DNA of 41,280 bases from positions 1 through 41,280 of the forward strand of contig JAMWBK010000015.1 in the NCBI GenBank assembly GCA_029953675.1, in the 5' to 3' direction. A program made the position numbers and the translations under genes. Positions 8,011 through 27,848 of this stretch are shown one piece after another. Origin of the DNA: Rhodosorus marinus CCMP1338. Lineage: Eukaryota > Plantae > Rhodophyta. Position 1 is the stretch's first letter; each line of letters opens with the position of its first letter. The notes beneath the pieces were generated by a model, which saw nothing but the letters and a program-made list of their open reading frames with translations, was not told the origin of the DNA and made no database searches.

Positions 8011-8254
8011 CCAACCAATTCAGGATTCCGCCCGCTTCGGTATACTTAACAAAGATATATATTCAAATTTTACGCAAACAGAAGAGATTTCGTGCTCAGG
8101 TCAATCGTTCATAATCCGTTAAGATAGCAGAATACTTATTACTGGTGGATATTTATAGAATCCAAGTATAAAAATAGAAAGTTTGCTTACTCCATTTGAT
8201 CTCCTTTTGTTTATCCAATAAATAAAATAAAATCATCGTTTAATTGTTTGTCAG

Positions 8255-8684: not shown

Positions 8685-8782
8685 TACCCAGTTTGCTGTT
8701 TGTTAGGGAAAGAAGGAATTTGTGCAATCCGGGATTGAAAAAAAAACACGGAGGGGAAAAAAAGACTACACGCTGTCAATAG

Positions 8783-8935
8783 GGTTGTAGGTGCCAGTTG
8801 GTCTGGTTTTTCACTGTTTACGCGACCCGGAAGTGGTTAAACGTGCGAAAACAAGGGGGTTTAAGGGGTTGGGTGGGTTGTAAACAGCGAAGAACCCAAC
8901 CCACCTGGCAAAAACCCCACCCACTTGGCACAACC
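8783..8935. mobile_element. MITE-like element, degenerate copy of 16567-16686
   Basis: Shares core gaagtggttaaac..gcgaaaaca..taaacagcgaagaaccc and terminus cccacttggcacaacc with the reverse complement of 16567-16686. Confidence 0.65.
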
Positions 8936-9182
8936 TTACTGCCAAGACCGCCCACCTCCAAAATCACAACCCGGATTATGCCAGAAAGCGGACTATCGAA
9001 TCAATGAGGTAGACAAACTTGACGGTGACCTCGGCGAGCATGAATTCCCTGGTAATCGTCAGTCTTGGGTGTCCAATTAAACTATCCGATCATCGATCCA
9101 TTGGTTCGAACATATCCTGTTTACAGTTTTTTTGCGGCAAAACCCGTCTATTGGTTTTCTTGGGTGACGGCGACGGAATTGG

Positions 9183-9324
9183 TGAAGGCAGACATGTGTC
9201 ATAACAGGGCCGCACTTCCCAAAAAACTCGTTGACTTCCCAAGGCCGAGGATAATGAAGGCAGACATGTGTCAGAACAGGGCCGCACTTCCCAAAAAACT
9301 CGTTGACTTCCCAAGGCCGAGGAT
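9183..9324. repeat. 72-bp-period tandem duplication upstream of the 9483 gene
   Basis: tgaaggcagacatgtgtc..cccaaggccgaggat at 9183-9252 and 9255-9324; single shorter version upstream of the paralog (13143-13197). Confidence 0.9.
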
Positions 9325-9482
9325 CTTTAAATCTTCTGGAGGTGTTTTGTGCGATTCGGTATTTACTTAAGCCGGATAAACGCAGCCGCATAATCGGGAG
9401 GTGACGGGGAGAATTCGGCACAAGCAGATAAGGGGATCTAGAATTAGTAGGTCTGGAAAGGGAAAACCACTAGCTAGCAAGG

Positions 9483-10610
9483 ATGAAGACCTGGCACACA
9501 ACGACGATGCTTCTCGCTGCTGGTTTCTTGGCTGCAATTGCAGCTGCCGAGTCCGGGGATTGCGACCCGAAGGGTGAATATCCTTACTTTCAAAGGAGGA
9601 CTAATTTTTTGACCACTGGTGGTCCGCCGGGTAGGGTCAATTACATTGCAACGATGAACACCAGAACAGGTTTGATTACAAACGGGATACCAAGTTTCGA
9701 GGTGGAGGTGGAAAACCACGCCCAACTTGTGAATATGACGAGAGTGAGACTTGGAGTCTGGCCCGACTGCAAGGAAGGAAGCGTTCCGAGTGGAAAAAGC
9801 AAGTTTCAGATCGCCTTGGACGGGGATGATATCGATCAGGATAACCTAGTCTTCGAGATTCCGGTTACAGCTATGCCGATTCCCAACTGCCTTTCTCAAG
9901 ACTCCATCTGCATGGTTGGGGCGTTCAGGGGATTCGTTGGAGATACGGAGACGAACCTCAGGATCTCCACGAAGCAACCTAGCGGTAGTCAATGCCCAGC
10001 ATCGACGCCTAAGGGACCCGACGGGATAACTCAGTGCCCAATTGGCGTTATATGGGTCGACGGCACCCCGTCGCCGTCGCCGACTCCTTCTCCCTTCTAC
10101 AACTGCGAGAAGGACATTGAGGCGACCGGGCTTGAGCCAACGTTCACTTGCGGAAAGAAAACAAACTGCATCTCTACCTTCAGTTTGCTTAATAGATTTA
10201 CAGGCACCAATGTTGCAACCGCGACTTACAGCACTTCATCTGTGAACGGCGAGCGCTGCTTCCACCTCGTAATCAAATTCAACTCGGGCGAACAGGGGCA
10301 GAGCATAACCGGCATGTACTTGGGCCTATGGGGAGCGGACCAGGATCTGAAGACAATCTGGGAAAACAACCAAGAGTTCCAAATCGCAACTTCAGTAGCC
10401 CCGGACAGCCCCTTGGAGTGGGATATCTGCCCCTCCATGTTGACCGATATGCCAAACTGTACCTCCATCGAGGACATGCTGTTCCTGAGCACGATTGAGG
10501 CCTCGGATGAGAGCGGTAATGGGTATTTCTTGGATCCTGATGTGGGGCAATGTCCCGATCTGGAGGTGATACCATTCAACGGATGCCCAGTCAACACGAA
10601 GTGGAGGTAA
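9483..10610 (+). CDS. Secreted Cys-rich protein, 375 aa, two related domains joined by a TPSPSPTPSP linker
   Basis: Intact ORF; signal peptide MKTWHTTTMLLAAGFLAAIAAA; RLGVW and YLGLW motifs in the two halves. Confidence 0.85.
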   Translation: MKTWHTTTMLLAAGFLAAIAAAESGDCDPKGEYPYFQRRTNFLTTGGPPGRVNYIATMNTRTGLITNGIPSFEVEVENHAQLVNMTRVRLGVWPDCKEGSVPSGKSKFQIALDGDDIDQDNLVFEIPVTAMPIPNCLSQDSICMVGAFRGFVGDTETNLRISTKQPSGSQCPASTPKGPDGITQCPIGVIWVDGTPSPSPTPSPFYNCEKDIEATGLEPTFTCGKKTNCISTFSLLNRFTGTNVATATYSTSSVNGERCFHLVIKFNSGEQGQSITGMYLGLWGADQDLKTIWENNQEFQIATSVAPDSPLEWDICPSMLTDMPNCTSIEDMLFLSTIEASDESGNGYFLDPDVGQCPDLEVIPFNGCPVNTKWR

Positions 10611-11284
10611 CTGATTCGGAAAGAGCGCCTGGATTGGAGATGGGTTCGTCGTATTTTCCTCGGGCAACCCCACTACGCCCGGGAATCCATCGCACAGCTG
10701 ATCTGCTACGTGAACCGTGATTCTATGTTCATGGGTCACCTATAACCGCAAGCAGCAAACAAAACTTTGCGAAACTAGCAGACTGCCATGACCGCTTCGG
10801 CGGTTTGTACGCGGGTTTAACATCGGACCCAGGTTCAGGGGTCGTAAACTTTACCGTAATACGGCAGTATAATGTGTGTCATGCATATGTGAATAAAATT
10901 CAGAACTTAAATGGTTAGATACCCAACAGGAATCAAACCAACCCCATGTGTAACGCCATGCACCATCGTTTAGTCAGAGATAGCAACCCTGGAGTAGCAC
11001 AACGTCCTCCGGGTGCCGCACGTGAGAGCTGCTCAGAAAACGGAAAAGGGGTTGAACGCCGTGCGGGATCATAGGTCTGAATCAATACTTGAACGTGTGC
11101 GTAATAGTTGGCGTGGACGAGGGCTTGAGAGGTATCTCCATCCCAACAAAGAAATTGCACGGTGCGAGGCGCATATCTCGTTCTCCATCAAGGGAAAACA
11201 ACTTATCTTTTTCGCGGTTCAACCACACGCGAGAACTTTCTAAACACTAAGCCCAGGCAGAAAAATTGGTGAAACTAGAAATGC

Positions 11285-11515
11285 AGTGGACTTCTAATAT
11301 AGCCTGAACTAGCGAAAAAAGCGTGCTACGGTGGTGCGTCTCCGCGAGCATGTTGCTAGAATCTCGGCAAACAGCGACGCTCAATCGGCGTAGGAGTACC
11401 AAATACTCAGCAGGATGATCTGTAACTCATTTCCGCAGCCACTCCACGCTTGAGTTTTCAAGATGATAAGAAATTTCCTTAATGAAAGGCTGGAACCACT
11501 CTGCCCTCGTCACCC
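11285..11515 (-). mobile_element. Degenerate group C 3' fragment
   Basis: Minus strand has ggttccagcctttcatt (RFQPFI), gtggagtggctgcggaaatg and ttcaggctatattag. Confidence 0.65.
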
Positions 11516-11711
11516 GGCCAACGTCGTCATGGATGGCTACTATGGTTAGACCGGGGTTTTTACACCAGAAAACGCGCCATGGATAGGGCACCTAACACCA
11601 GTGTCCACGCAGATCAGTTTGTTCTACAGCCGATGTGACATGCAATTGGTATCGGTGTGACATGGTTTGTGAGTAGCACGACAGCCAAAGAACGTAGGGG
11701 AGTCTTAAATG

Positions 11712-12125
11712 TCATTTACGTAGCCCAAACAGGCGCACCGCTTCCAGCATCTCGGAGATGGTGGCCAGTGGTTGCGGCGGTTGAGAGCATTCTCCGGGTC
11801 GAGCCGTAAGACAACTGCTGCAGGTGGCACGAGAGATGGGCCTATATCGCATGGAGTGAGCGTTCGCATCCACCGCTGACTCTATGCCTTGTTGTAAGGG
11901 TACGACCAGTTCGCGGATTCGGTCTGTATATCCACTGTGTGTCCCCACCTTCCTTAGGGCTCCGGGACGACGATAGGGCGAACGCCTCACCTCGTTCAGG
12001 ATCCGTGTTGGTCGTAGGTTTCTGTACGGCAGTAATCTGCTGCTGCGCAGTGCCCAGGTTAGAGGAGGTGGAAACTCCTCCAGTTCGGTACCTAGTAGCC
12101 GGAGAATTGCGGATCAGAGCCAATT
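11712..12125 (-). mobile_element. Degenerate RT-domain remnant of a CRE-like element
   Basis: Encodes VSGGCERSLHAI, as at 38479-38802 and like VSGGCEHAIH in the 25095 ORF. Confidence 0.55.
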
Positions 12126-12409
12126 AGACCTGCTGAGTGTCCCCCTGCATGTGCTCTGCGCGGAGCTCGCTGTAAAAACTTGGGATTTTACTGAAGGTGA
12201 TTTTTTCAGATACAGACAAGGCAACACAAGACAAAGGGAGGGAGGGAGGTGGAGGAGGAGGTTTCTATTGGCAGATCGTGAGGACATTTCTTCCCCCACT
12301 CCACAGCCCCCACTCTGGGGGCCTCGGTATCCTCGGCGTTTTAAATCGCTTCCTCATCCTATCGATTTCTATTTGAAACTGCCTCTGTGATTTTTATCCC
12401 GTCGCGCTC

Positions 12410-12986
12410 CCCTGAACCAAAATTGGGCGCTGAGTTATCCCGTTGGATCCCTTAGGCGTTCACTCTGGGCATTGGTCACCGGTATACTGCGCTTCATGGA
12501 AATCCTGAGGTTCCTCTCCGTACCATGGCGAATCCTCTGAATGCTCCGACCATGCAGATGAAGTCCTGAGACAAGTAGTTAAGAATCGGCATCTCGTTAA
12601 CCGGAATATCGAAGACTGGGTTATCCTGATCGATATCCTCCGCGTCTAAGATGATCGGAAACTTGGTTTTTCCATTGGGAACGTTTCCTTCGTTGCAGTC
12701 GGCCCAGACTTTAAGTATCACACTCGTCAACCTCACAAGTGGGGCGTAGTTTTTTGCCTCTACACGTGGAAGCTTGGTACACATTCGTATTCACACCTGT
12801 TCCAGTGTACATCTCTGCAACATATTGGATATTACCCGGCGGTTGGTTTCCCCCACCAGTGGTCAAAACTCTAATCCTGCTTTTGAAACTGAGGATGTTC
12901 GCGGCGCAATCCCCGGACTCGACCGTTACAATTGCAAGCCAGAAACCAACCGCGAGGAACCCCGTCGTTGTGTACAAGGTCTTCAT
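12410..12986 (-). pseudogene. Frameshifted, truncated paralog of the 9483 secreted protein
   Basis: MKTLYTTTGFLAVGF..ESGDC, VWADCNEGNVPNGKTKF..DIDQDNPVFDIPV, ICMVGAFRGF; homology extends to the GITQCPI region; at least two frameshifts; upstream 12987-13270 matches 9110-9482. Confidence 0.85.
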
Positions 12987-13270
12987 CCTTCCTAGCTAGT
13001 TGTATTCCCTTTCCAGCGTTCCAATTCTAGATCTCCATGTCTGCTTGTTCCCGCAATCTCGCGACAGTTCCCTTTGTGCAGCTGCGTTTATCCAGGTTGA
13101 GTAAATACCCAATCGCAGAAAATACCTCCCAGAAGAGGATTTAAATATCCTTGGCCTTGGGAAGTATGGCCCAGTTCTCACACCGGTAGGCCTTCACCCA
13201 TTCCGTCGTTATACCGAAGCAAAACCAATAAACTGGCTTCGTTCTTTTAAAAAACAGTGAACAGGATATA

Positions 13271-13420
13271 TTGAATGAATTTGTCTCTTCGGATACTGAA
13301 AGGAAAAATCCCGAGGGGAAAACCAAGACTAAGCGCAGGGAAGATCGCGCGCTTCCAACATCAAAGCAGCGATCATACGCCATAGCAAGAAACGAGTCAA
13401 ACACGAGGACAGACGGTCAG
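13271..13420 (-). mobile_element. Divergent group B 3' end
   Basis: Minus strand ...CFDVGSARSSLRL.. frame equivalent, T-rich UTR and attcattca tail; abuts the paralog's upstream region. Confidence 0.7.
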
Positions 13421-13594
13421 GCTTCCTTTCTTTCCCCGCGGGTTTATTTTTCTTTCACTCTCGGATTAACCAGAATTCACTAATCCAAACCACTCGAAAG
13501 GCCAGTTCAGAATAGATAAGATATTCAGCGGTTCTCAAAGAAACGAATGGTTTAATCGGAGGCTGAAAAAAAAAACCCCGAGGGTAAAAAAAGA

Positions 13595-14168
13595 CTAAGC
13601 GCGGCGAAGTACTCGCGCCTCCAACATCAAAGCGGCATTCATGCGCCACAGCAGGAAACTTAAGCGGGTAAACAACGATTGAAGACGGTCAGGGCGTTCG
13701 CGGAACAACTCCCGAAGCCAGCGAGAACCAACAGAGTCCATGAACCCGAAGCACTCAATGATCAGGGGTACCAAGCGATGTGCTAGTGCCGAAGCACGAA
13801 CACCAGGGGAAGACAAAGCCCCCGCGTATTTGATCTCTTTGCGGCGTCTCATGCTGTCGGCGGCAGATCCACGGCGCTCCCCCACAGCCGGGAGATAACG
13901 ACTAGCTTGAGGGTTAGGAACAGCAAGATCAACGTATGTGGTACGGCGGCTGTCGTCACAGGTGATCACCAGGTCGGCTACACGGCGTTCATCATTTTGA
14001 AAGTCCGCGACGGGTAAAGGTTTCTCACGTTCGATTTCCAGACCGGCTTGCCGGACTATAGGCCGAAGTTCCCGGTATAACAGGTTCAAGATCCGTGTAT
14101 GGCGGCGGGTTCGAGCACCTTTCACTGCTGGGCAACTAGCGAGCAGGTGGGCGCCAAAATCTGCGTTG
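13595..14168 (-). CDS. Group B ORF2 C-terminal part: end of CCHC knuckle plus RLE nuclease (detached fragment)
   Basis: NADFGAHLLASC..RTRRH, VADLVI..TYVDLAV (PD-D/ExK-like), KEIKY, VPLIIECFG. Confidence 0.85.
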
Positions 14169-14534
14169 ACACATCAAGGTAGTTGCCGGATCACATTACC
14201 CAAAAGTGCTAGTCTAGTCCAATCCACTTTTTGAGTTCTTGCCGAACTAACAGCGAACGCTGGTGCTGGCCAACCCACTGACCTAAATTTCAGATGCGAC
14301 GCGGTACAAGTTTTTATCCAGACCTACTCAAAACACCAGCGGCAACCAATCGCCTCTATTGCTGATACGCAATTGGAAAGCAATCAAGGCAGCATTTCAT
14401 AATCTTTCGATAAGATGGGACCGGCTTTCCCTCCCCGCTGCTGCCCACCTACTTTAAGGGCGGGGGACAGCAGGGGTTGGTTGGGGGCAGCTACACAACA
14501 CCTGTCCTTGGACGATCCCTAAGAATTGGAGAAT

Positions 14535-15959
14535 CTAAGCAGGCAAGACGAGCATTTTTGTAAAAGTCTCGATTAGCAAGGGAAGCGCTTGATATAAGAA
14601 CGAGCGAAACTTTCGCCTTACCCCTTCTTCTCCAGGTAGACCACACACCGATCCGAAACTCCCTATTTGGCCGTCAAAGATACAACGGCCGGGTTGGCGT
14701 GCCAATTCAGCTTCGAATTGGCCTTCGTTGAGACCCCCGGGTTGGTCGGGTTGCAAGATTTCCCATTCCCCTCTCGGTGGCGGATTTCTACTCGAGCAAT
14801 ACCCGCAAATAACGCTGCCAATGCGCCCTACGAGTGGGTAGTCCAGAAGCGGCCCAAATAGGGAATTCGTTGCAATCTGTCCTACTGGCACTGGGCCAGA
14901 AGGAGAATTCGCAAAAACCGGGGTGCTGGCGAAAGAGATAAATTGTAGTAGCCGTCGTTTGTCCTCGACGTCCTCGACCCTCACTGAATACCTCGAGGGA
15001 AATTCAGAATCTGTCAACTCGACAGCAAAAGCGAGTACAGGTGTATTCAAGGTATACAACTCTGGCACGTTAAATACCGCAACGCTGAAAGAGTCGAAGT
15101 TTCTTATAAAAACTACAGGGCGGCGGATCACCGTACTCGATTGCGCAGGGACGGCCTCTGACAGGTGGCTCACCGTAGGCGCTTCCGGAGCGATGCCCTC
15201 TGACGGCAATGGCTCGGGTTGCTTCTCGTAGAGGGTAAGCTCGAGCGCAAAATCTGGCGGGTTAGATTCGCTGAAGCCGGGTGAAAGCACAAATTCAACT
15301 ACTCCTCCCGTACGGTTGATACGGTTGATGCCGCCAAATTCCGGTTGCTCGCCGATCGAACTGCACGAAGCTTGGAGCGTGCATGCAACGAATCCATCCC
15401 CATTCGCATCGGCAATAGAAGTGCATGAACTGGAACCTTGAGCGGTGGAACAGGTTGTGTCCCCCGCTATTGGAAAGCTCAGTCCAGCAATACGCACTTT
15501 GCCGTCCTCCATTCGAACCTTCGCTTCAACCACGAGCGCCGGTATGAGACGTTCTTCACTGCAGCAGTCACCGTCTGTCTTGATATCGTCCAGGCATGCG
15601 TCTACTCTCACCGTGGTCGGCTCACTATCTAGAAACTTTCTCTTACGAGTGAACCGAGCATTACTGCGAGGAATCCCTCCCAACCATAGCCCGAGTTTGG
15701 CTCGTCTAATCCCAAGTCCCTCGCGCACGACAAAAGTGAACCTGGTACACGTCTCTCCCTTGTTCGGTCCCTGCGTCTTCACGACATCCTTATTGCTTAC
15801 GCTTCCCACCGTTTCACCTTCAACTTGCAGTGGAAAGCACGAGGAAGAAATTGTGTACGATGAAAAGAGAGGATTAACAAAGTTTGCGCATGTGCCAACG
15901 TCGGCAACCGTCAAGCCAAAGATCCCGGCAAGCAGGATTACTACCAACCCGTACTTCAT
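14535..15959 (-). CDS. Secreted Cys-containing protein, 474 aa
   Basis: Intact ORF; internal ATG at 15959 gives signal peptide MKYGLVVILLAGIFGLTVA; N-terminal domain with AKLGLW resembles the 9483 domains. Confidence 0.8.
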   Translation of the reverse strand: MKYGLVVILLAGIFGLTVADVGTCANFVNPLFSSYTISSSCFPLQVEGETVGSVSNKDVVKTQGPNKGETCTRFTFVVREGLGIRRAKLGLWLGGIPRSNARFTRKRKFLDSEPTTVRVDACLDDIKTDGDCCSEERLIPALVVEAKVRMEDGKVRIAGLSFPIAGDTTCSTAQGSSSCTSIADANGDGFVACTLQASCSSIGEQPEFGGINRINRTGGVVEFVLSPGFSESNPPDFALELTLYEKQPEPLPSEGIAPEAPTVSHLSEAVPAQSSTVIRRPVVFIRNFDSFSVAVFNVPELYTLNTPVLAFAVELTDSEFPSRYSVRVEDVEDKRRLLQFISFASTPVFANSPSGPVPVGQIATNSLFGPLLDYPLVGRIGSVICGYCSSRNPPPRGEWEILQPDQPGGLNEGQFEAELARQPGRCIFDGQIGSFGSVCGLPGEEGVRRKFRSFLYQALPLLIETFTKMLVLPA

Positions 15960-16566
15960 GAATAATCTCTCAATTTCACTCCCAAAATCTAAAGATTGTC
16001 CACCCGCAGCTGCTCTCCCACGCGTCTGCCCTCCCCTCAAACAGCATCTCAAGTGGTATGTATATACCCTTCCGCGTATCTTCGTACTGAAGCCTGTACA
16101 CAGCATTAAGTCAATTGTAAAACCACCATTGTGACAACCGGGTTTGTGTCTTGTCCAATGACATTACAATCTGAGTAGTGCCAAGCTCTGGATTGGCAAA
16201 ACCACTGCTACGAACGATAGCAAGCAAACCCAAGCGCCGATGGCGCGCCTCAGCAAGACAAACGTGACGCACCATTCATGGGGGTTTTACTACCATTCAT
16301 GTAATCAGTGTGCGGATTCCCCACGCCCCCTCGCCATCCCCCTCCGACTCAGTACGAGAATATTGATGTACTTTTTGCCTTTTTTTTCAAGTTTCGCATT
16401 GTTTCCCGTTGCATCCATATAGCCTGTTCCCAGAACGGCTTCCCCCACCCACCCCCGCGCCCTCCGCGAGGACCATCAATCTTCTGCACGAAAAGTCTCC
16501 CCTCCCAACGCCTTTTTCCTCTTTTTGTTTGGAGCGGCTGAAGAGAAAACAAACGAAAAAACTAAG

Positions 16567-16686
16567 AGTTGTGTCAAGTGGGGGTCGGGTTCTTCGCTGT
16601 TTACCCCTCTAAACCTCCATGTTTTCGCGGGTTTAACCACTTCTGGCTCGTCCACGGCGAAAAAAAACGACCCACTTGGCACAACC
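16567..16686. mobile_element. 120-bp MITE-like element with 16-bp terminal inverted repeats
   Basis: agttgtgtcaagtggg (16567-16582) versus cccacttggcacaacc (16671-16686), 14/16 complementary; second copy at 8783-8935. Confidence 0.75.
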
Positions 16687-16725
16687 AGAAAAAAAACCGT
16701 TGGCAGATTGAAATGCGCTTAAAAA

Positions 16726-17165
16726 ATGGGAATTGTTTTGCTGAAGCCGCCACTGCAAGATTTTCTTATCGCTATTTTTCCAATTCTGTCCTTTAATCGG
16801 AACTGAATGAATGCGTTTGAGACTGAGAAAAATGAAGACAAGACGAGGCGAGGGGCAAAAAAAAGGAAATTAAGGACGAGGGAAGCACTGGTTCCCCAAG
16901 AAATTTAGACGGGTGAACACAACGAGGGGAGACGTTCAGGTCAAACAGTTGGACAACACTCCCGAAAGCCAGGAAACGGAATCCATAAACCCAAAACATT
17001 CGATGACCAGATGGGAATTTTTTTGGTGAAGCCTCAAACTCCAAGATTTTCTTATCGACTATTTTTCCGATTCTCTCCTTCAACCGGAACTGAATGAATG
17101 CGTTTGAGACTGAGAAAAACGAAAACAAAACAAGGCGAGTGGAAAAAAAAGGGAACTAGGACAAC
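16726..17165. repeat. ~150-bp direct duplication (16726-16880, 17011-17165) containing a degenerate minus-strand group B tail
   Basis: Both copies carry caagattttcttatcg..ggaactgaatgaatgcgtttgagactgagaaaaa. Confidence 0.75.
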
Positions 17166-17521
17166 GTACGGGTGTACTACACGGGGCACTATGTGCTAGT
17201 AAAACATTTTAATATTCTGTTGATTTCCTCGTTATCGGAACCGATCATGTGCGCTTCTACTGTGGGGAAGGCAATGGCCACTCTGACACTGACGACTTCT
17301 CCACCAGACGCCAACAGATCGGCAGGAGCAGCAACGGGTCACAAATGTAAGTCGTACTCTGTTTCGGTAGAGCTCGTGAAAGGGGTACTTTTCGCAGGAC
17401 GGATCATACACCAAGGCGTGCAGGATCAGTTTTGAGCACCCAGTAGAAGCTTCAGGCTATGCTAATAAAGCCAGTGGGGCGATGAGACCATGCTAGTAAA
17501 GTCCAATAAAGCCAGTGGGGC

Positions 17522-18391
17522 CAACACAGTGCGGCTCACGCAATCTTGCTCAACTCTCCCCTCACACCGCCTACCACCGCTGCTCGCGTCCGCGGCATGG
17601 GAGGCCATCTATCGCACTTGTGGTTAACCACGCTGCCATCGTCACTGGGTCACCGTCCCGATGCCTTCCAGTTCCGCTCTGCCGCACGGATCTACCTGGG
17701 TTTGCCACAAGCTCCGTGGAACTCTAATCGGCCGTCTTTCTGTCAGGGATGTGAGAGTCGGATAGATGCTTGTGGTTACCACTTCTTAGGCTCATGCGGA
17801 TTGTTGAGAGGTCTTCGTACGAGGCGTCACACTCGCTTCAAATACATTCTTAGCGAAAGCTTGACTCGGGTAGGGCACACGGTGGAGGTGGAATCGGAGC
17901 TGCCCAGATCGGTCTCGGAAACAGCGCCGCCCCGCTGTATCGCAGATCTTCTTGTCTCCGACGCTGCCGCCCGACGCTCAACATATGTGGACCTCGCGAT
18001 TACATGCCCTGTTGCCAGCGCCCATCTCACTGCTGCCGCCGGCCGCCGGGGGGCAGCCGCTTCTGCCCTTCGCCGAGTGAAGGAACGACGGTACGCTGAG
18101 AGTATGGCCAGCCTGCCTTGTGCAGAGGGTCGCTCACACCGGTTCCAGCCTTTCATTGTGGAAAGCTTTGGCCACGTGGAAAAGTCGGGTTTGGAGTGGC
18201 TGCGGAAATGTTTTGCTGAGCATCCTGTTGAATATTTGGAACTTTTGCGTCGTTTAAGCGTCTCTCTGTGGCGCTACTCGAGCAGCATGCTTGCTCAGGC
18301 GCGCCATAGGCGCCTGGGTTTGCACGCTTCCCTACCTAGTTCTTAGTCCCTTTTCACGCCTTGCGTAGCGCTTCAGGCTATGCTAATAAAG
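17522..18391 (+). mobile_element. Group C 5'-truncated retrotransposon, best-preserved copy
   Basis: ORF 17546-18346 plus 3' UTR ending gcgcttcaggctatgctaataaag. Confidence 0.9.
17546..18346 (+). CDS. Group C ORF2 C-terminus: CCHC knuckle plus RLE nuclease (5'-truncated)
   Basis: CQGC..GYHFLGSC..RTRRH, IADLLV..TYVDLAI, KERRY, FQPFIVESFG; ends HASLPSS*. Confidence 0.85.
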   Translation: MLNSPLTPPTTAARVRGMGGHLSHLWLTTLPSSLGHRPDAFQFRSAARIYLGLPQAPWNSNRPSFCQGCESRIDACGYHFLGSCGLLRGLRTRRHTRFKYILSESLTRVGHTVEVESELPRSVSETAPPRCIADLLVSDAAARRSTYVDLAITCPVASAHLTAAAGRRGAAASALRRVKERRYAESMASLPCAEGRSHRFQPFIVESFGHVEKSGLEWLRKCFAEHPVEYLELLRRLSVSLWRYSSSMLAQARHRRLGLHASLPSS

Positions 18392-18746
18392 CATGAGGGT
18401 ATGGGCTGGGGGGCGAAGAAGTGGGGTTTTGAATCTTTTTCGGTCGCGAGCGTGTTTGTTTGTGGGAAGCGCTTCCTCTGGTAGTCCTTCCCCCCGCTTT
18501 TCCGGGGTGTGCCGTTGCGACTGCAACTGTCTCTCTCTCTCGTGGGGGTGCGTTGAGTCCTGGCTTCACAACCTCCCTCTTGTTCGATATCATAATCACC
18601 CCCCCCATACATCCAACCCGACTCGCCACATCAACCTCCACGACATCACGCTCAGGTCCCTGCTCGGAAGCAGGAAGCACACGCAGTTCATTCTCTCCAC
18701 AGGCTAAAACAGCCAGTAAAGCCCACAAGAACACCCAGCGATACAT
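18392..18746 (-). pseudogene. Probable secreted-protein gene fragment cut by the group C tail
   Basis: ATG at 18746 gives signal-like MYRWVFLWALLAVLACG; the ORF has no own stop before the antisense group C tail. Confidence 0.45.
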
Positions 18747-18924
18747 ATCGACACTTGATATCGCTAACAGACTCCACCCAACCTCGCAAGGAACCAGTCC
18801 TTCTGCAACACACCTCCACCACACCCTCCCCCAATCCGTCTTCCCCCAACAACGTCCAGACGAACATATATAGAGAGAAACCAAAACCTCTCTGACAAGC
18901 TCGAACCGAACAAACGACAGGCCG

Positions 18925-21509
18925 GCCAAAATCTGCGTTGTCTTCAGTCTGAGAGCAGAGAGGGCACGACGGACCCATCTCGTACGGCCAAGGGGGCTGA
19001 TGTAAGCCGAGGTATAAGCGCAGTGAAGTACGCACTTCGAAATCCGACAGTGTGAGTGGCGGAAAGGCTGGTACGGTCATGAGCCACTGAGAGCTAATAA
19101 CCCCTCCAAGACTACGTAGGCGGGCGCGAGCGCGGGAAGATGAGACCATCTGCGCGAGGAGTCGGCCATATGCAGCACGGTGCAAGTCCCAAGAAAGGAT
19201 ATTTTGCAGCGCATCCGTGCGTGCTTGAGCTCGGCTCCCAGCGCGCTGGGAATCATCAGGAGGATCAACTGGGACTTCTTCTTCTGCGGCAACCACTGGG
19301 TCAATCTCCACTAGAACAGGTTCAGGCGCAGGACGAATCCCCGGGGCGGAGCCTCGAGAGCGGTCAAATACAGCTCGCCAGTCAGGAAGACGGGGTTGAA
19401 CGGTTTCGGGGAGACTAGTACAGGAATTCAGGGCGGTTTGGAGCTCCAGAAACAAGTCTTGGGCGCTTTCCGGTACGCTGGGAAGCAAGACACCCCGCGA
19501 GAGGCTCGCCATCAAATTGCGGAACTTCGAGATACCCAAGCTGCTCAAAGTGGGAAGTGCGGTTCCCCAGGCCCCTACTGCGGCTGCAGGTTGGACCACA
19601 ACACGATTGCAGAGGCCCAGTCCCCCCAATCGCAATGGGAGGCCTACCTGGGCGCGCACAACATCAGAGGTGGGTCGCGGCAGAGCGCTCAGCTCTTCAT
19701 CGAGAAAATACCCCAGGTCACGGAAACTTTCAGCATCCGCACGAGTGGCCAAACACCGGTCCCAATGAGTTGGAAGTGAGCGAAGCCATTAGGTTAACCG
19801 CTGACTGCAACAATACCGAAACAGCAGCAACGAGCACTGGAGAAAGCCCGGAGGTAGCCGTCGAAGCTCTGCAACCAGCTGTCTGTGCTTACCGAGGAGC
19901 TGCAGCAACTCGCCTTCAACGAAGGACGGCGACCCGTAGGGGATGCCTAAGTGGACAAAACTATCCGGTCTCCAAATATCCTGGAACGACGCAGGTACCT
20001 GCTGCTCTTGTGCAGCTACACCTCCCCAGCAGAACGATTTGTGATGATTAACCTCCAGGTCAACCCGCGAAGCCAAGGAGCGGAGACGATCATAAGCGAG
20101 CGCTAGAGTATCAGGGGGCCCCAGGAGGCGCACGTCGTCGTGGTATGCAACCGTACGAACCTGCGGGAATTCGGAGCGAAGACAAAGCAAGACGAGTTGT
20201 AGTCCACAGGCATGTAGGAAAGGGGACAAGGGATCACCCTGTTGTACCCCTGTGCGCGCCGCAAACGTGTGTGAGGAAGCGCCAAGGGTGTCATAGGTAG
20301 CCCCACGACCAAGCGGAGAATAAAGTCTACTAACAAAGGGAAAGCCTACAGGGAAGACTTCGCGCACCACGTGCATGAGAGCCGGACGAGAGACGCGGTT
20401 GAACGCATTGGTAAAATCTACAGAGAGGAGCCCAGAATCTGGGAAGTACGCCATTTCCGAACGGAGTAAAACAGACAACAACTCACAGCCACCACCATAG
20501 CCCACGCCTAACTGCACGTGCCCAAAGAAACGGCGGGATTCGGGAACCAGGATTTTCACTAACCATCGCGCCGCCAATTTGCGGACCACCTCAACCAGGC
20601 CAATAGGGCGAACAGCAGGGCTCGAGGCGTGTGGCCGGGCTTCGAAAGCAGACACAACTGCGAACGACCGACCAAGAACCACGCACACTCACACAGGGGA
20701 TCACCATTCACAAGCGCTTCGACCACCCACGCCAACGCCTTCAAACCTTCATCACTTAAGAAACGGAGATATTCCACCCGCAGCCCCGAGGGCCCTGGGG
20801 AACGGCCCTTCGGAGCATCATGAACCAACTGACGCACCGCCTCCAGATTGACCACTAACCGCGCACTGGGATGTGGCGCGGCGCGGTACTCTTCCAACAC
20901 TGATTCAAACGAGGAGTCCCAAGGGGAGCCTTCCGAGGGAAAGAGCAAACGGAGCGGTGAAGAAAGATCATCGGAGTATGGAACCACAGGTTGCCGCTGC
21001 TGGAGGATCCCGGCTGCCCGCCGCAGATCACCGCCTGCCACCGCGTGACGCGCCCGATTCTGTCGAGAAGACCTAAAAGCTGAGGAAGCGCTAGGAGAAA
21101 AGGAAGAGAGAGAAGCGAAATAAAGACGTTCGAGGTCCTCAAAGTCGCCGGAAAGGAACATTTGCAGTTTTCGGCGAGGGTGGACCCGGCGAGGATGTGG
21201 GTTGAGGGGGACGGTAGAGGAGGTGAGCACGAGGCGGGGAAAAAAGAACAAGAGTTCCCAGCGAAGAGAGCAGTGAGGGGTCGCGGCGACCTGCTGCCAG
21301 AGAAAATCCAACACCAATCCTAGGGGCTTATGAAGTCGACGAAGGAGCCGTACGGCCGTGCTCTGACGACAAAGGGGAAGGGAACCGTCCGGGTAGGAGG
21401 CGACAAGGTGCGAAAACCACGAGAGAACACGCTCATGCCAGGCTGAGCGGTCACTGGTAAACAGGGGTAACCGGGACGACACGCACGCGGAGGAGGAAGA
21501 CTCAGGCAT
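18925..21509 (-). pseudogene. Group B ORF2 (pre-RT, RT, thumb, start of CCHC), two frameshifts
   Basis: Starts MPESSSSACVSSRLPLF; SPGPSGLRVEYL, RPIGLVEVVRK, QLGVG..GGCE, DFTNAFNRV, GVQQGDPLSP, YHDDV, LPLRLGGLGL; frameshifts near 20620 and 19780. Confidence 0.9.
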
Positions 21510-22801
21510 CGGGCCTCCCCTCAGTCGGGAAGGCAGATCGAATATCCGGAGGAGGTGCCTCGGAGGGAGGCTCAGGAGCCGCACGACGCTTACGTGGGGG
21601 GCGCACGAAGGAACTAAAAGACCTGAAGAAAGTAGACACAGGGTTTTCAGCAGCGGAGTCTTGACTGAGGGTGTCTAGAGCCAGCGGATTCGGAGAGGCC
21701 GATGGTGCTTCTGCCATGTCGGTGTCACGAGCCTCGGAGACAGGGCGAGGGGAGGAAGGGGTGCTCAAGAGTCAGCGGCAGAAGGTCAAACGCAGGGTGG
21801 GCTTCCAGCAGGGTGGCCTCAGTGGAGAGGAAGGCCTCTAACGCGGTGCGGAGGACCCCGCGAGGAGGAAAACGCGCGAAGAGGCTCGCCTGTATGCGCG
21901 AGAGCCGCGCCGCATGAGTGTGTAGCGCAACAACCGAAGCCTGCGAGGCATCCAGGTTTTGCAAGGCCGACGGAGGAACCCAGCCGGCGTCAAAACGATC
22001 GAACTCGACAAACAAAGAGACATGAGGACGAGTCAGTATCATGTTGGCCAGAGCAGAGCGCTGGGGCGCGGGGGTGGTTACAAGCGATTGAAGGAACTGG
22101 TAAGCCGAGTCAGTAACAAGAAAACAGGCATGAGGGCCCGTGAAGTCCACATATAGGAATTCAGATGGGGCGACCCCAAGGGAGGAAGCCATGGTGTCGC
22201 GAAAATCGCGGTAGTGGACGGGCGCGCGGCCCCGACCACGAGAGGGGGTCTGGGGACGCACGTTCGTCATCCAAACAAAGTGGAACGGAGATAGTTGGCG
22301 AGAAGAGTCAATAGGGATGTGTTGTGGCATCATACGCACCATTGCCGTCGTGCGTTGTTCAGAAGAGCCCCTGCGCAGGACCTGCGAATAGGTCGCACGT
22401 GGGGCACTGGAGGGAGCAGGATTCGGGCCCGACGCGGGCCCAGGAGGCGTCTGTCCTTGAATAGGGGTAGGCCAGTCGGAATCAGGAATGACCGGAGCGG
22501 AGCGCTCGGGTCGGGTGGAGAGCAGGCCCCGCTGTACCGTGCGGATCCGCGGGGACGGGCACCGGGGGTATGGGGCAGGCGCGGAGGCGGAGAAGCGCTC
22601 CAAATAGGCGATCAGCAGGGGCAGGCGGTGTTCCTGGGAAGCAGTCACAAGAAGACTCGTCAGTTTCGAGCAGATCCCATGGGCTAACTCGTCAGCGCAG
22701 TCCGTGAGGGTGGCCGCGGTACTAAACCTGCCCACGCTGAGCTCCACGCGCGCTGAGAGAACGGCTCCGTCCGCCGGAATGGGTGGGAAAACCCCAACCA
22801 T
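21502..22801 (-). pseudogene. Group B ORF1 (gag-like), one frameshift near 21750
   Basis: Likely ATG at 22801 (MVGVFPP); TYSQVLRRG, FLYVDFTGPHACFLV core, helical region, Pro/Ser-rich tail in the 21502-21768 frame. Confidence 0.7.
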
Positions 22802-22954
22802 AACGATAGGAAGGTGTGAAAAACCGATTCCCCCACGAAACCCCCAAAAAGAGAACTTGTTCCCAACGTTTGCAACCAAAGAAAAACCACCACGACCTCC
22901 AAGGGGCGCTAGCAACCCCCAGCACACACCACACCACTAGAAGATGCGGGGGAA

Positions 22955-22980
22955 AGTCTGGGGTTACGTTAGTCTGGGGT
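22955..22980 (+). repeat. Telomere-like repeat tract (G strand on +)
   Basis: agtctggggttacgttagtctggggt, unit TTACGTTAGTCTGGGG. Confidence 0.85.
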
Positions 22981-23056
22981 TTGGGGTTGGACTTTGGAGT
23001 TTATCGTGGTGATAAAGTTACACTTTCATTCTTTCTACGAACGCTTATCGAGTGAT

Positions 23057-24577
23057 ATGACTACTCTCGAGCCCGTGCCTCCGGATGGGGGGGGCTTTTG
23101 CACAGACGCAACGATGGAAGACCTCCCGGCCGTTAGCCTGAGGGCAGACGGACCCGAGCCTCTGCCCGTACCTGTTTCTGAGCCTACAACTGCATCTGCA
23201 CTTGACAACGACGTACCTACTCCCTTGGCTATTGACCTGAGCTGCGGAGCGCTGAAGCTGCATCTCGACGCGCCCAAGCATAAGACCCCGCTCTACAATG
23301 GGCTTATGCTGCGGTTTATGGGTCTCTTAGCCCAGGCACACGCCAATGGCACCGAGGCTCAACTCCTTCACAATCTGACTACGACGCCACAAAAAGCTGC
23401 CCCGAGGGCACAACGCCCCCTCCCTGTCTACGAACCAGCAAACTACGCCACTGCAACAGCCCGCCCGCGATCTCCCGAGACACGTGATCTCGATTCCAAT
23501 GCATTCCCAGATCTCGCAACGGCCAATGAGCAAGCACGGACAAGGACTCGAGCTCAACCTCAACCAATGAGCTGGACGACACGTGTCCGCGACAACCAGA
23601 CCCCAGCAGCTGCCAATCGCTCGTTTTTCGCGAGCATTCATGGGCTGCAGTACCAGAGCCAGAAGGACGTTGATGCATTTGTGCTACTCAATGCTCGACC
23701 TCGGGACTCCACCAGAAGCAAGGCCCATCATGCTTGGGATATCGAGCGCCTAGCCGGCCTTCAGAAAAATTCGCTGCTCCAGCTGGACTACTTTGATCAT
23801 CATGTACACGTCATCGCTCATCATACCGCCTTCCAACTACTCCGCGACGCTACCAACGCAGGGGCCTTCGAACCCACCAGAGGAGCACACCTGCCTCCTG
23901 ATCAACGTATCCAAGCTGTCAAGCTCTCTCCAACGTCACACGAATACCTGAGCATGAGGGAAAAGCTCCGTCACCAACCGGCAGACTATCCCCGCGCTGC
24001 ACTGATCCACAACCTGCTCCGCTACCGACGGATCCAGCGGATTGTTACAAATCGCAGGAGTCTCCCACCCAACAACCGAGAGGCACTCCTGGGCCACGTC
24101 AGGGCCGAGCTCGATCGCACCCTGGCCAGCCTCCACGCTCACGCTCAACGAGCACCCGACAGTTGCCTGCGCGTGCCATTCTCCGACCCTGAGCTTCCAG
24201 AGCACTCGACAACAACCGAGCGCAGAGAGCCACGCTCTCTGGACCGAACCCGGGTAGCTGACCCTCAACCGGCGGCACTGGAGAGGGAGAGTGCGGAACC
24301 CCTCGCAGCGACTACGCATAGCGCTGATTCTGCCCAAGTCCCAGCCGCTCGGGAGGACAACACGCCTGAGACGCCTGCCGCGACAGCCCGTGATCCACTA
24401 GACTCGGAGCCTGACCCCTCCACCACTAGCGATCAACCAGTGACCCCTGCAGAGCCGATGCAAGGACTTTCGACGGCCCAAGACAAGAGACAAGTGGCTC
24501 CACCCACTAAGCGCCCTAAGCCTGCCAACGCCGTCGACGACCTCACGCCCGACTCCCTCTCGTCGACTCAATCATGA
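23057..24577 (+). CDS. Group A ORF1, 506 aa, gag-like/nucleic-acid-binding (inferred)
   Basis: Uninterrupted ORF; ATG 77 nt inside the element; core LLQLDYFDHHVHVIAH; conserved in two further copies. Confidence 0.85.
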   Translation: MTTLEPVPPDGGGFCTDATMEDLPAVSLRADGPEPLPVPVSEPTTASALDNDVPTPLAIDLSCGALKLHLDAPKHKTPLYNGLMLRFMGLLAQAHANGTEAQLLHNLTTTPQKAAPRAQRPLPVYEPANYATATARPRSPETRDLDSNAFPDLATANEQARTRTRAQPQPMSWTTRVRDNQTPAAANRSFFASIHGLQYQSQKDVDAFVLLNARPRDSTRSKAHHAWDIERLAGLQKNSLLQLDYFDHHVHVIAHHTAFQLLRDATNAGAFEPTRGAHLPPDQRIQAVKLSPTSHEYLSMREKLRHQPADYPRAALIHNLLRYRRIQRIVTNRRSLPPNNREALLGHVRAELDRTLASLHAHAQRAPDSCLRVPFSDPELPEHSTTTERREPRSLDRTRVADPQPAALERESAEPLAATTHSADSAQVPAAREDNTPETPAATARDPLDSEPDPSTTSDQPVTPAEPMQGLSTAQDKRQVAPPTKRPKPANAVDDLTPDSLSSTQS

Positions 24578-27500
24578 GCAGCTCCTCAGACGAATATACT
24601 CCGAACCGCTCTCGCTCATCCCGCCGTGCTCGTGCTCGTCGCCAACGACCTCCCACTTCGACGCAGTCACTCTTCGAGACCGACTCGAACGCCTGGCTCT
24701 CGTCTCTGCACGACTTCACTCTCAACGTAACCGATAATGGCAACCGCTGGTGGCAGCTGACTCAGGCTCCGACGCCTACTCGCCAATTCGTCCCCGATAA
24801 CCTGAAAACACGCTGGAACCATCTCATGTCGAAAGCCCTGGAACTTGCCCTTGATACGTCAGCGCCGAACCTGTCACGCCTGTTCATCTTCGCTCTCCCC
24901 AGTCTCGCACTCGGCTACACAGGCGACCTGGCCCCTTCTGCGCAGATGCTCGCCGTTATGGACGGAAGGTTCTCCACGGTGTGGGAACACCTTACTGCTC
25001 ACAGCAAAACCCTTGACACCAACTGTATCGTACCTCCGCCGCCTCAGACCCGCCACCGACAGAACGAGCCCTACAACTCGCCAAAGCTCAACGTATGTCC
25101 CAGTCTAGCCAACTCCTACTGGCCACCGATCTTGCCTCGAAGACTCCTGCCACCTGGCGCGTTCTGACTACGCTCTTCCCTGAGTACGAGGCCGCAACGC
25201 TCTCCTCGGAGCTTGAAGACGCCCTACAGGCAAAGCTCAACGGACTGCAACGCAATATATGGGACCCGACTTTGGCCTCTGACGAGAGCCTCCTGTCAAC
25301 GCTGGAACACCTACCGTACGCCACAGCCCCCGGGCCGAGTGGACTCAAAGCCGAACATCTGCGAAGTCTCACCATGACAACGCAACCGGTACTTGTACGC
25401 TTCCTTCGCAAGCTTGCCACCACTCCGGAGAGCTTCCCTGACGTGTTTCTCGAAGCCATGCGCAGCAACCGACTCCTCGCGAAAGACAAGCGAACGTCTG
25501 CCGAAGCTAGACAAGGGTACCCTCTTCGCCTACGCCCGCTAGGGATTCCTGAGGTACTGCGGAAGGCCGTCACCCAATGGACACTTCGCGCTGTCGCCAC
25601 GCCCCTTCGCGACTTTCTGCTCCCGGAACAACTCGGCATCTCGGTCAGCGGCGGCTGCGAACACGCCATCCACCTCGCGGAAGCCCACCTCGCAGCGCGC
25701 CCGAATGACGTGCTCCTCAAACTTGATCTCGCAAACGCGTTCAACAGAATCGACCGACGCCTCGCAAACCGTATCATCGAGCTAGCTTTCCCCGAATTGA
25801 AGTCGCTTATGACAATGAGCTACGGACCACGAGGCGAGAGCGCCCCACGCCAATTCGGATGGCGAGACAGCGATGTCGATGACTGGCTCCAGCTCCGAGC
25901 CTGGACTGGAGTCCAACAAGGCGATCCGTTGGGACCTGCTTTACACGCGCTCGCCCTTTCCCCACTCCTACGAGCACTACGAGACCGGTTTCCGAGGATC
26001 ACCCTTAGCGCAATCCACGACGACCTCACCTTACTTGGCCCTCTGAAGGACGTGAAAGAAGCGCTACACTGGAGCGAGCACCACCTCCCCGAAATAGGCG
26101 CACAACTTCAAAGGACGAAATGCGAGCTTTTTGGACTCCAACTGCCGACGACCAGACTCGTCAACAGGGAAATTCCCGACGTACATGTCACCCGGGACGG
26201 AATCCAACTTTATTCCATCCCTATTGGCACACGGACCTACGTCCAAGACGCGAACAGGAAGCTACAACGAGAACATGAAAAACTCGTCCAAGAGGTCATC
26301 CGTCTACCGACCACTGAGCTACCAATTAAACTGTGCCTATTCCGCTACTGCGCAGGACCGCGTCTAGACTTTGCTCTACGCACGCTCGCCCTACAATACG
26401 GAGCCAATCTCGCACGCGAAGCCGATCGCATCTCGCTCCTGGAACTCGACAAACTGTGCGGCTCGCTCCTCGAAGGCCAGGACCTCACAGGACCCGCAAA
26501 GACGTGGTCGAAGCGCAGATCCAGCTCCCTTGCCGATGGGGTGGCGCAGGCCTAGCGATGAGAACACGAATACAACCCCTCGCCTTCTTCAGCAGTTGGC
26601 GACAGACTCTGAAGCTCAATTGGACTGGATCTAGCCACCTAGGAGCGCTACTCGATGCCTGCACATCGACGAACCTGACCGAGCACCATCACATTCGACC
26701 CCTGCTCCACTCGACGGATCAACTTGGAGCACAACTAATCGAAGCGAGCCTCCACTCAAAACGCTGCCTGGCACGAGGAACACCGGCCCCCATACTCCGC
26801 CTAACAGAATGGCAATCGTTGGAGAGCCAAGAACAAGCAGAGAACCCGCACACACCACCCGACAGGCCCTTGATCGGTTCAACCCAAAAACTCCTCTCCA
26901 ACTGGAGTCACCGACGGGCATTCGAGGAAATGGTGGAGAACGCGGAGATCAGCGAGACGGCACGTGCGCGAATACGCTCCTGCAAGGGATCAGGAGGGGT
27001 ACTTGGCTGCGAGACTTGCCAAGGAAACACGGACGCGGCCTAAGTAGCGGAGAACTGAACCTGAGCCTTCGACAACTGTTGGGATTACCCCTGCCGGGTG
27101 TACGAATACTTGGTACGTGTACGATATGTTCCCAACCACACGACGCTGCAGGCATTCAACGCCTTCACCACTGCACCAGCTCTACCGGCAGTTGGACAAT
27201 TCGGCATAACATGGTCAGGGACGCCCTGGCGACAGTGCTGAGACAATGGCGACTAGAAGTGACAATAGAACCGACCGGACACTACCAAGGCAGTCGGCTT
27301 CGGCCTGACATTCTAGCCCGACACCCACGAACAGGCAAGCTCTACGTGATCGATGTGAAGGTGACCTCGCCTTTGCAAAGAACACACCTCCACAAAGCGT
27401 CTTGGGAGACCGGGTATGCGGCACGGAAAGCGGAAAAGTTTAAAGAGTCCAAATACCGTGACAGTATCGGAGAACATAACGACGACATCTTCGTCCCCTT

Positions 27501-27723: not shown

Positions 27724-27801
27724 GGGTTTCTTTGCTGACCAATAGGATCCTTATTGCTTCTTAATGGGCTCCAATAGGGAGTTCTTCAGTAAAGTGTACG
27801 C

Positions 27802-27846: not shown

Positions 27847-27848
27847 CA

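Follow-up and report, generated by a model that had tools for sequence, protein, structure and literature searches.

An interrupted group B retrotransposon

A gene-carrying block of 4,756 bp interrupts a retrotransposon of the group B family in Rhodosorus marinus CCMP1338. The block (14169–18924, delimited by 16-mer search, joined-frame translation and comparison of B copies) lies in a contig of 41,280 bp, here called the window, and is a true filled site within one B subfamily, because four other B copies read through the site with a single 16-mer. Its proposed mode of arrival is based on this one instance. We favour, with a probability of about 0.4, a two-step nested insertion at a LINE-type staggered break with an unspliced RNA as the template.

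The exact 16-mer GCCAAAATCTGCGTTG stands as a direct repeat at both ends of the block (left target-site duplication 14153–14168, right target-site duplication 18925–18940, exact-match search), and these are its sole occurrences in the window. With up to two mismatches allowed, no further occurrence was found there (shuffle expectation 0.02), which bears out the first-pass annotation in reporting an exact 16-bp duplication around the block. When 14169–18940 is removed, one copy of the 16-mer remains and a single open minus-strand frame runs through ...CPLCSQTEDNADFGAHLLASCPAVKGARTRRH... into a PD-(D/E)xK-like C-terminus, restoring the zinc knuckle across the join as had been claimed. In groups A and C of the window, the knuckle is continuous at the position where that of group B is split.

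Uninterrupted B copies with a single 16-mer each were found in the paralogue loci L004 (8373–9152) and L007 (20062–21001) and, at full length, in L005 (1275 to about 6018) and L006 (14273 to about 19016). All four carry the joined sequence, confirming both that the element was once continuous and that the uninterrupted reading exists elsewhere. Substitutions between either window half and L005 or L006 amount to only 1.1–1.8%. An origin of the halves from different subfamilies does not hold, since both are 98–99% identical to the full-length copies and belong to the same subfamily. A chance meeting of two partial B copies was rejected on the equal divergence of the halves and the exact join in four copies. 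Homologous recombination through a similarity longer than 16 bp was discarded as well, the flanks past the 16-mer scoring no better than shuffles on either side.

An assembly artefact (a Nanopore misjoin or a chimeric read) is very improbable. In favour of an artefact, the window contig is small, redundant and in places unpolished (11544–13301), and its sequence at 22955–22960 differs from that of contig 11, another contig of this assembly. However, contig 11 contains the whole block and both junctions, collinear with the window at 99.1%, and a misjoin would not leave 16 bp of the interrupted element exactly duplicated.

Group B is an R2-like non-LTR retrotransposon with a putative restriction-like endonuclease and a full length of about 4.74 kb. 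The restored element had been put at ~4.6 kb, which falls short of the full length; the window copy lacks its first ~100–150 nt, where the window contig joins B to group A. Translation and copy comparison place the 5' part (ORF1-like region, reverse transcriptase, N-terminal knuckle half) at 18941–22960 and the 3' part (C-terminal knuckle half, putative restriction-like endonuclease region) at 13542–14168, both on the minus strand. The 5' part has one in-frame stop in the window copy, which also carries a frameshift at 20627 that is not present in contig 11, and the 3' part ends in a 3' UTR of ~55 nt and a short (CGTT)-type tail. The reverse transcriptase domain matches PF00078 at 19789–20688 (minus strand, E 4e-11), and the best PDB relatives of group B are R2 proteins (E 2e-9). 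The CCHC knuckle, CPLC...H....C, lies upstream of the putative nuclease and exists only once the flanks are joined; it then aligns with the R2 knuckle (query residues 553–595 to 944–983 of 9nl2_A, E 8e-7) and with groups A and C. The putative nuclease has the spacing ADLVI...YVDLAV...K, conserved in groups A and C, and the sole Pfam match of the C-terminus is a weak one, below the cut-off, to the restriction-endonuclease family Uma2 (E 0.067).

The family lacks LTRs and includes 5'-truncated copies with the common 3' end ...GATTAAACCATTCGTT, the copies ending there measuring 170, 263, 293, 339, 780, 940 and about 4,740 bp. Its target duplications in this genome are of about 4, 10, 12 and 51 bp, and the flanks differ at every copy, thus B is not site-specific; Rfam and tRNA scans of the window for an RNA-gene target gave nothing. 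Elements of groups A, B and C have no poly(A), and their copies in the LINE nests are concatenated head-to-tail. As a protein query for annotated B copies, the B C-terminus gave only one remote match because the TE ORFs are unannotated in this genome; the copies were located by retrieving paralogue loci instead. The whole composite of B and block is flanked by a 10-bp duplication, TTTGAGAACC in the minus-strand reading, with one copy at 13530–13539 and the other in contig 11, ahead of the B 5' end (L001, 319–328).

A paralogous gene unit within the block

The block carries the gene NDN08_005925 (NDN08_007006 on contig 11; 14454–15959, minus strand, from family comparison), which consists of an exon at 15959–14622, an 87-nt GT..AG intron at 14621–14535 and an exon at 14534–14454. 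A secreted-protein gene had been annotated at 14535–15959 as a single ORF; the gene is present, but in two exons spanning 15959–14454. Its product is a Cys-rich protein of 472 aa with a hydrophobic N-terminus, and its family comprises ~10 members with a hypervariable centre, whose gene units are always located in LINE nests. The intron is conserved across the family, with its GT..AG intact in the block. The predicted protein structure is beta-rich and of low confidence (mean pLDDT 54.5), without a fold match at E ≤ 0.001; no Pfam domains were detected in the ORFs of the block, and a metagenome scan for the conserved 3' end of the gene unit returned no matches. The plural "host genes" of the first-pass annotation finds support for one gene only. 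The supposed second signal-peptide ORF (18378–18929, minus strand) has no homologue in 5.8 billion proteins and overlaps a TE-derived module, and it was rejected both as a further gene and as a lead to the donor.

The block is a paralogous copy of the gene-family unit, consisting of ordinary repeat-rich genomic DNA. It is collinear with the P0002 unit over 14170–17162, with non-coding parts 84–95% identical. The 3' UTR and downstream region of the gene (14169–14453, minus strand) is 84–90% identical to the P0002 locus, the homology stopping at 14167–14169, and the promoter/5' region (15960–16224, minus strand) is 85–92% identical to it. At 16726–17155, two 145-bp direct repeats, 88% identical (16726–16868 and 17011–17155), enclose an old B-like 3' fragment (16897–17009). 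The same arrangement is found in the paralogue locus L002 (8648–9339), and what had been taken for a MITE is actually this repeat pair. The nested B and C pieces reported before are indeed there, the B-like fragment being joined on the plus strand (17447–18394) by two short group C tail fragments (17447–17515) and the standard 876-bp "C-short" unit (17516–18391) with its tail. A plus-strand LINE 5'-UTR-like module follows (18395–18555), seen also after C tails in L002, L004 and L005, and then unique sequence (18556–18924) that matches no sampled locus and contains the start of the minus-strand "signal-peptide" ORF. The block thus carries TE debris in both orientations and about 3 kb upstream of the gene, including the promoter.

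At the point of L002, the closest paralogue locus, that matches the gene-proximal end of the block, a 5'-truncated B-like 3' fragment begins within 3 nt. This fragment is of another subfamily than the window B, has the same orientation, and is joined about 290 nt from the B 3' end, compared with 627 nt in the window. That two independent junctions share one nucleotide points to a defined terminus, e.g., a transcript 3' end; in such dense nests, the coincidence could arise by chance in roughly 1–2% of cases. No target duplication of at least 10 nt was found around the L002 B-like fragment or unit.

Possible routes of arrival

No inverted repeats pair the two ends of the block, and poly(A), LTRs and transposase are all absent, in agreement with the first-pass annotation. 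There is no A-run at either block junction. The hallmarks of a processed retrocopy are missing (the intron is kept, poly(A) is not present), as are those of TIR transposons and Pack-MULEs (inverted repeats, transposase), and the 16-bp duplication and the termini ACAC...GCCG (plus) or CGGC...GTGT (minus) do not agree with a Helitron. A degenerate (CGTT)n at the upstream end was considered as a mark of orphan 3' transduction and dropped, being equally common in shuffled sequence. A non-autonomous DNA transposon of unrecognised type, making 16-bp duplications and carrying host genes as cargo, would account for the clean duplication, the precise empty site and the defined gene-proximal terminus. 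We consider it highly improbable, as the block has neither terminal inverted nor subterminal repeats and its ORFs encode no transposase or any Pfam domain. No eukaryotic DNA transposon superfamily is known to make 16-bp duplications. In addition, no second copy of the block, and no shared termini (including the right one) with other flanks, were found in about 190 kb of LINE nests (the window, contig 11 and six 21-kb paralogue loci), so that the sampled loci lend no support to the "unrecognised non-autonomous element" suggested earlier.

In the favoured nested insertion, group B (about 4.74 kb) first inserted at the locus, leaving its own 10-bp duplication, and 4,756 bp of LINE-nest DNA then entered it within the codons of the CCHC knuckle, two steps that we regard as shown. 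The B strands had been opened 16 bp apart, and fill-in of the overhangs gave the exact duplication. We infer that opening and joining were performed by LINE machinery, through target-primed reverse transcription by a B-, C- or A-type protein acting in trans. The template would have been a long unspliced read-through RNA of the paralogous gene unit, with its 3' end about 285 nt past the stop codon, at position 14169. The block would be cargo that encodes no mobility functions, and its entry would have inactivated this B copy.

Counted in favour of this nested insertion are the empty sites, the equal divergence of the halves, the filled site in contig 11, the 10-bp duplication of the composite, the P0002 paralogy ending at the block end, and the location of the gene and B on the same strand. 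A duplication of 16 bp is in range, since those of the B family vary from about 4 to 51 bp, and an insert without poly(A) is expected because groups A, B and C lack it. R2-type reverse transcriptases reportedly jump between RNA templates and copy non-self RNAs, and an RNA 3' end accounts no less well than a DNA break for the gene-proximal end shared with the paralogue locus. On the other hand, the 3' end of the block has no A, B or C 3' tail, and the insertion site lacks the ...GAA in which B priming sites end. Considering the retained intron, about 3 kb of upstream DNA and TE debris, an RNA template would have to be a 4.8-kb unspliced read-through. Besides the two contigs with the same structure, the annotated proteins include no donor copy at 90% identity or above, and this counts against copying, which ought to leave a donor behind.

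The unspliced RNA template is slightly preferred over DNA capture, which we regard as somewhat less likely. In that case, double-stranded DNA in linear or circular form, excised either from a LINE nest with a paralogue or from an unassembled donor, would have been ligated into a staggered break in B, with the 16-nt stagger coming, e.g., from two nicks of an abortive LINE endonuclease attack and fill-in producing the duplication. Such a route corresponds to the "capture at an RLE-made break" proposed in the first-pass annotation. The block, in which a promoter and an intron occur together with TE fragments of either strand, resembles plain genomic DNA, the missing annotated donor gene is what relocation rather than copying predicts, and the LINE endonucleases active here give target staggers of 4–51 bp. 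However, random ends are unlikely to match the independent TE junction of L002 within 3 nt, these elements have no known means of excision, and fragments captured at breaks usually leave deletions or microhomology, not a clean duplication. It is also improbable that R2-like LINE endonucleases relocate multi-kilobase host DNA by a DNA-level cut-and-paste leaving no copy behind, in which they would cut at recurrent sites beside hypervariable secreted-protein genes and the fragment would be pasted into a second staggered cut.

The arrangement around the junctions might alternatively reflect a one-step chimeric cDNA made as B itself retrotransposed, with the reverse transcriptase switching after 627 nt of B RNA to the gene-unit RNA, copying this from its 3' end, and going back to B RNA 16 nt behind the point of departure to complete the element, so that the 16-mer would be a re-copied stretch and not a target duplication. 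The shared orientation of block and B, the B 3' part (B-like in L002) directly downstream of the unit at different switch points in the window and L002, the single 10-bp duplication around the whole composite in contig 11, and the head-to-tail A, B and C concatenates, which suggest frequent template jumps, are in line with this. It is nonetheless improbable: microhomology is at most 2 nt at both junctions, re-entry inside the RNA just left, overlapping by exactly 16 nt, has not been described before, a staggered cut is the simpler source of the duplication, and the missing annotated donor weighs against it as it does against the nested insertion. Templated insertion during replication or repair (fork stalling and template switching, or microhomology-mediated break-induced replication), where a nascent strand would have left B, copied 4.76 kb of a paralogous locus and re-entered 16 bp behind, is consistent with the block being paralogous genomic DNA; such events give short flanking duplications and need no transposon features. 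The junctions without microhomology, the lack of a donor among annotated proteins and the unexplained coincidence with the L002 junction make it quite implausible.

Relation to known systems

L1 elements reportedly produce 3' and 5' transductions, orphan transductions and class 1 "templated sequence insertion polymorphisms". The block resembles such LINE-mediated retroposition of non-LINE RNA in being a several-kb non-TE genomic insert with a target duplication of 10–20 bp and no encoded mobility functions, in a genome with active LINEs. In contrast to the L1 cases, it has no poly(A) and no source LINE attached, keeps its intron and promoter, has no donor found, and its likely driver is a restriction-like (R2) endonuclease, not an APE-type L1. 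L1-U6 and L1-mRNA chimeras, and template jumping of R2 in vitro, have reportedly been observed. As in template-switch chimeric retrocopies, cellular sequence is joined head-to-tail to a LINE 3' part in the same orientation, and the window and L002, as independent events, break the LINE at different points; here, however, the insert is also preceded by a LINE 5' part, with 16 nt of overlap, an arrangement not described for template switching. Group B shares with R2, R4, NeSL, CRE and HERO the reverse transcriptase, the CCHC knuckle, the absence of poly(A), frequent 5' truncation, short repeat tails and head-to-tail arrays, and has a putative C-terminal PD-(D/E)xK-like nuclease, but differs from them in lacking site specificity.

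Mitochondrial DNA, retroelement cDNA and extrachromosomal circular DNA are captured at double-strand breaks by end joining. The block is likewise an insert without transposon features at a single break, whereas its clean 16-bp duplication with no target bases lost would be unusual for end joining. Pack-MULEs, Helitrons and CACTA transduplicates also place a host gene within a mobile-looking insertion. The block, however, lacks terminal inverted repeats and a 9-bp duplication. It also lacks the 5'-TC/CTRR-3' ends of Helitrons, which insert without any duplication, and its gene is whole, with promoter and intron, not a fragment as in gene-capturing DNA transposons.

Red-algal nuclear transposons are almost undescribed, and this locus reveals R2-like LINEs that are not site-specific and form a young, active-looking family. 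It also offers a clean case of a complete gene inside a LINE with a textbook target duplication, and a single-locus test of RNA- versus DNA-mediated gene movement by restriction-like-type endonucleases. If LINE machinery is responsible, it would provide a route to move or duplicate a fast-evolving secreted-protein family confined to LINE nests. The analysis also indicates that the public R. marinus assembly contains contigs that are redundant and in part unpolished, as well as two faulty gene models.

The interrupted group B element and its uninterrupted relatives

Exact copies of the 16-mer that bounds the 4,756-bp block (14169-18924) stand at 14153-14168 and 18925-18940, with no further occurrence in the window, and the flank comparison showed no similarity beyond 16 bp at the two copies. 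When the flanks were joined, a minus-strand frame ran through CPLCSQTEDNADFGAHLLASCPAVKGARTRRH and on to a PD-(D/E)xK-like C-terminus, with an RT domain upstream of the restored knuckle. The joined stretch aligns with the zinc knuckles of R2 proteins of solved structure, and also with the uninterrupted knuckles of groups A and C, the other LINE groups in the window.

Because TE ORFs are unannotated in the R. marinus genome, further B copies were sought in six loci of 21 kb that each hold a paralogue of the cargo gene (L002-L007), all of which, like the window, are dense LINE nests. Four B copies there span the insertion site, two of them full length (L005 1275-~6018 and L006 14273-~19016) and two 5'-truncated (L004 8373-9152 and L007 20062-21001), and all four read ...GGGCGCCAAAATCTGCGTTGTCTTCAGTC... 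with a single 16-mer. Together with the restored knuckle frame, these copies bear out the proposal of the first-pass annotation that group B was continuous before its interruption. The 5' half of the window B differs from the L005 and L006 copies by 1.1-1.2% substitutions and the 3' half by 1.6-1.8%, and between L005 and L006 themselves, too, the 3' part is the more divergent. The similarly low divergence of both halves and this shared trend place them in one young subfamily; an origin from different subfamilies, which had been named as one possible refutation, was not found.

The block is present in two contigs of the same assembly. The cargo ORF matched Rhodosorus marinus proteins in the protein search, and the 90% cluster of the cargo protein has two entries, NDN08_007006 on the 1.44-Mb contig JAMWBK010000011.1 (contig 11) and NDN08_005925 on the window contig. 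The CCMP1338 assembly was produced from Nanopore reads with NextDenovo and Pilon polishing and comprises 13 large and 4 small contigs (PMC10250338). Window 4552-22960 corresponds to the initial 18.5 kb of contig 11 in an alignment of 99.1% identity that takes in the block and both 16-mers; the differences are mainly homopolymer indels, plus one unpolished stretch (11544-13301), and the two B copies differ by 0.3% substitutions. The window thus represents redundancy in the assembly or, alternatively, a very recent segmental duplication of the contig 11 region. The two contigs belong to one assembly and are not independent of each other; misassembly is among the less likely explanations. In contig 11 the whole composite of B and block lies between copies of its own 10-bp repeat, TTTGAGAACC.

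The stretch 11544-13301 carries dense 1-3-bp deletions relative to contig 11 and resembles unpolished Nanopore consensus, and what looks like an RT frameshift at 20627 comes from a C absent here but present in contig 11, so that frameshifts in the window contig should not be taken as decay. The contigs also disagree at the B 5' end (window 22955-22960; contig 11 locus L001 283-429). In the window, B is without its first ~100-150 nt and adjoins a tail and 5' end of group A, whereas in contig 11 the B 5' UTR continues and is followed by a flank with the 10-bp duplication; one contig has either a misjoin or a structural variant here.

Content and history of the block

The block is without transposon hallmarks, as had been claimed from the sequence, with neither terminal inverted repeats nor poly(A), and searches of it found no Pfam domain and no RNA genes. 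A DNA transposon of unknown type is accordingly a less likely source. Its segment 14170-17162 is collinear with the locus of paralogue P0002 (L002 11689-8648), with 84-95% identity in promoter, intron and 3' UTR vs 42-75% in the central coding region. The cargo gene (14454-15959, minus strand) retains the single intron of its family (87 nt, 14621-14535), with the same splice sites as P0002, P0003, P0004 and P0010, and its product has 472 aa; both deposited models, NDN08_007006 and NDN08_005925, are faulty, with the intron and C-terminus mis-called. Structure prediction for the protein gave a beta-rich model of low confidence, for which no fold match was obtained. The block further contains, as does L002, an old 3' fragment of B-like sequence flanked by 145-bp direct repeats, and in addition two C tails, a LINE 5'-UTR-like module, 369 bp of unique sequence and a standard 876-bp C-short unit (17516-18391), whose 5' end is constant across many loci. 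For the putative second signal-peptide ORF reported by the first-pass annotation, a search for homologues returned none.

Identity to relatives is 70-90% for the TE pieces within the block, and the block unit is ~10% diverged from its nearest paralogue, whereas B copies differ among themselves by only ~1%. This difference in age indicates that the block pre-existed elsewhere as a unit before it entered a young B copy; judged from sequence divergence, it would not have been assembled within B by serial insertions.

The cargo-gene family has ~10 members, is confined to Rhodosorus-like algae, and shows conserved ends and a hypervariable centre. A 2,748-bp contig from a related alga (L008, Logan SRR32518360) holds an orthologue-like P0007 unit at 78% identity, and B-like and C-like fragments again adjoin the gene. 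The 876-bp C-short unit (17516-18391; L002 4450-7832; elsewhere) comprises no more than the knuckle and nuclease part. More than 10 copies, frequently arrayed in tandem, share an identical 5' end, and the unit resembles a non-autonomous group C derivative that has been amplified.

Insertion of a pre-existing unit at a staggered opening

These data show that a once-intact B copy was opened with a 16-bp stagger and that a pre-existing paralogous genomic unit was inserted there. Group B has the features of an R2-like LINE with a restriction-like endonuclease, its nuclease motif being recognised by eye only. Its 3' end is ...GATTAAACCATTCGTT followed by (CGTT/CATT)n, and its priming sites all end in ...GAA; the flanks differ at every copy, so that B is not site-specific. 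The target duplications of B measure ~4, 10, 12 and 51 bp, and 16 bp therefore falls in the stagger range of the local LINE machinery. The staggered nicks would most likely stem from LINE proteins. Template switching in one step, with re-copying of 16 nt, is less likely, as is replication-based template switching. Copies of A, B and C are frequently head to tail, and the block ends are unlike the 3' ends of B, C or A.

Window and L002 remain homologous up to the final base of the block (...CCTTGATGTGT/CA vs ...CCTTGAGGTGA/CA), with 90% conservation over the terminal 113 nt of the unit. In L002 a sense, 5'-truncated B-like fragment (~290 nt, 75% identical to B) starts at most 3 nt from the homology end, while in the window the same point adjoins B at 627 nt from the B 3' end. 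That two independent junctions fall at one nucleotide, each with a same-orientation B-type 3' part, suggests that the unit has a defined 3' terminus; by a rough estimate, such a coincidence is expected by chance in ~1-2% of cases in such nests.

The unit could have entered as an unspliced read-through transcript, terminating with the 3' end of the gene, that was copied in trans by target-primed reverse transcription. An RNA template is slightly favoured, given that the terminus seems defined and that B 3' parts are repeatedly found beside the unit. Capture or relocation of a genomic DNA segment is almost as strongly favoured, in agreement with the retained intron, the 3 kb of retained upstream DNA and the lack of an annotated donor at least 90% identical. 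The block did not classify as a processed retrocopy, TIR transposon or Helitron. The event is similar to LINE-mediated transduction or templated insertion and to chimeric retrocopies, but differs from both in that the block has no poly(A), keeps intron and promoter, and lies inside a LINE with a duplication. We regard the insertion event as real, based on one instance.

Other LINE copies and repeats

A 5'-truncated B copy of 263 bp (8255-8684) has an exact 51-bp target duplication and, at its 5' junction, an extra 38-bp duplicate of the downstream target (8569-8606 / 8647-8684), and L003 11811-13127 is an internally deleted B derivative, 89.5% identical to B, with the 5' region fused directly to the terminal 57 nt of the 3' UTR. 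At 22955-29671, a full group A copy and then a 1.86-kb 5' part lie in head-to-tail order, with (GGTTACGTTAGTCTGG)n tails between; this tail also occurs at at least five further A-like 3' ends on the minus strand (29671, 31382, 32001, 38997 and 40778).

A 750-bp inverted repeat, 78% identical (9306-10043 / 12421-13165), surrounds an annotated 375-aa ORF (9483-10610) in which no Pfam domain was found. The window also contains a 72-bp repeat in two copies (9183-9324), a (GGT)12 run adjoining a C tail (1582-1617) and a 27-bp tandem repeat of nine copies in a minus-strand ORF (34792-35038). An isolated, exact 35-bp direct repeat (36864-36898 / 37373-37407, 509 bp apart) may mark a further small insertion, as its target duplication.
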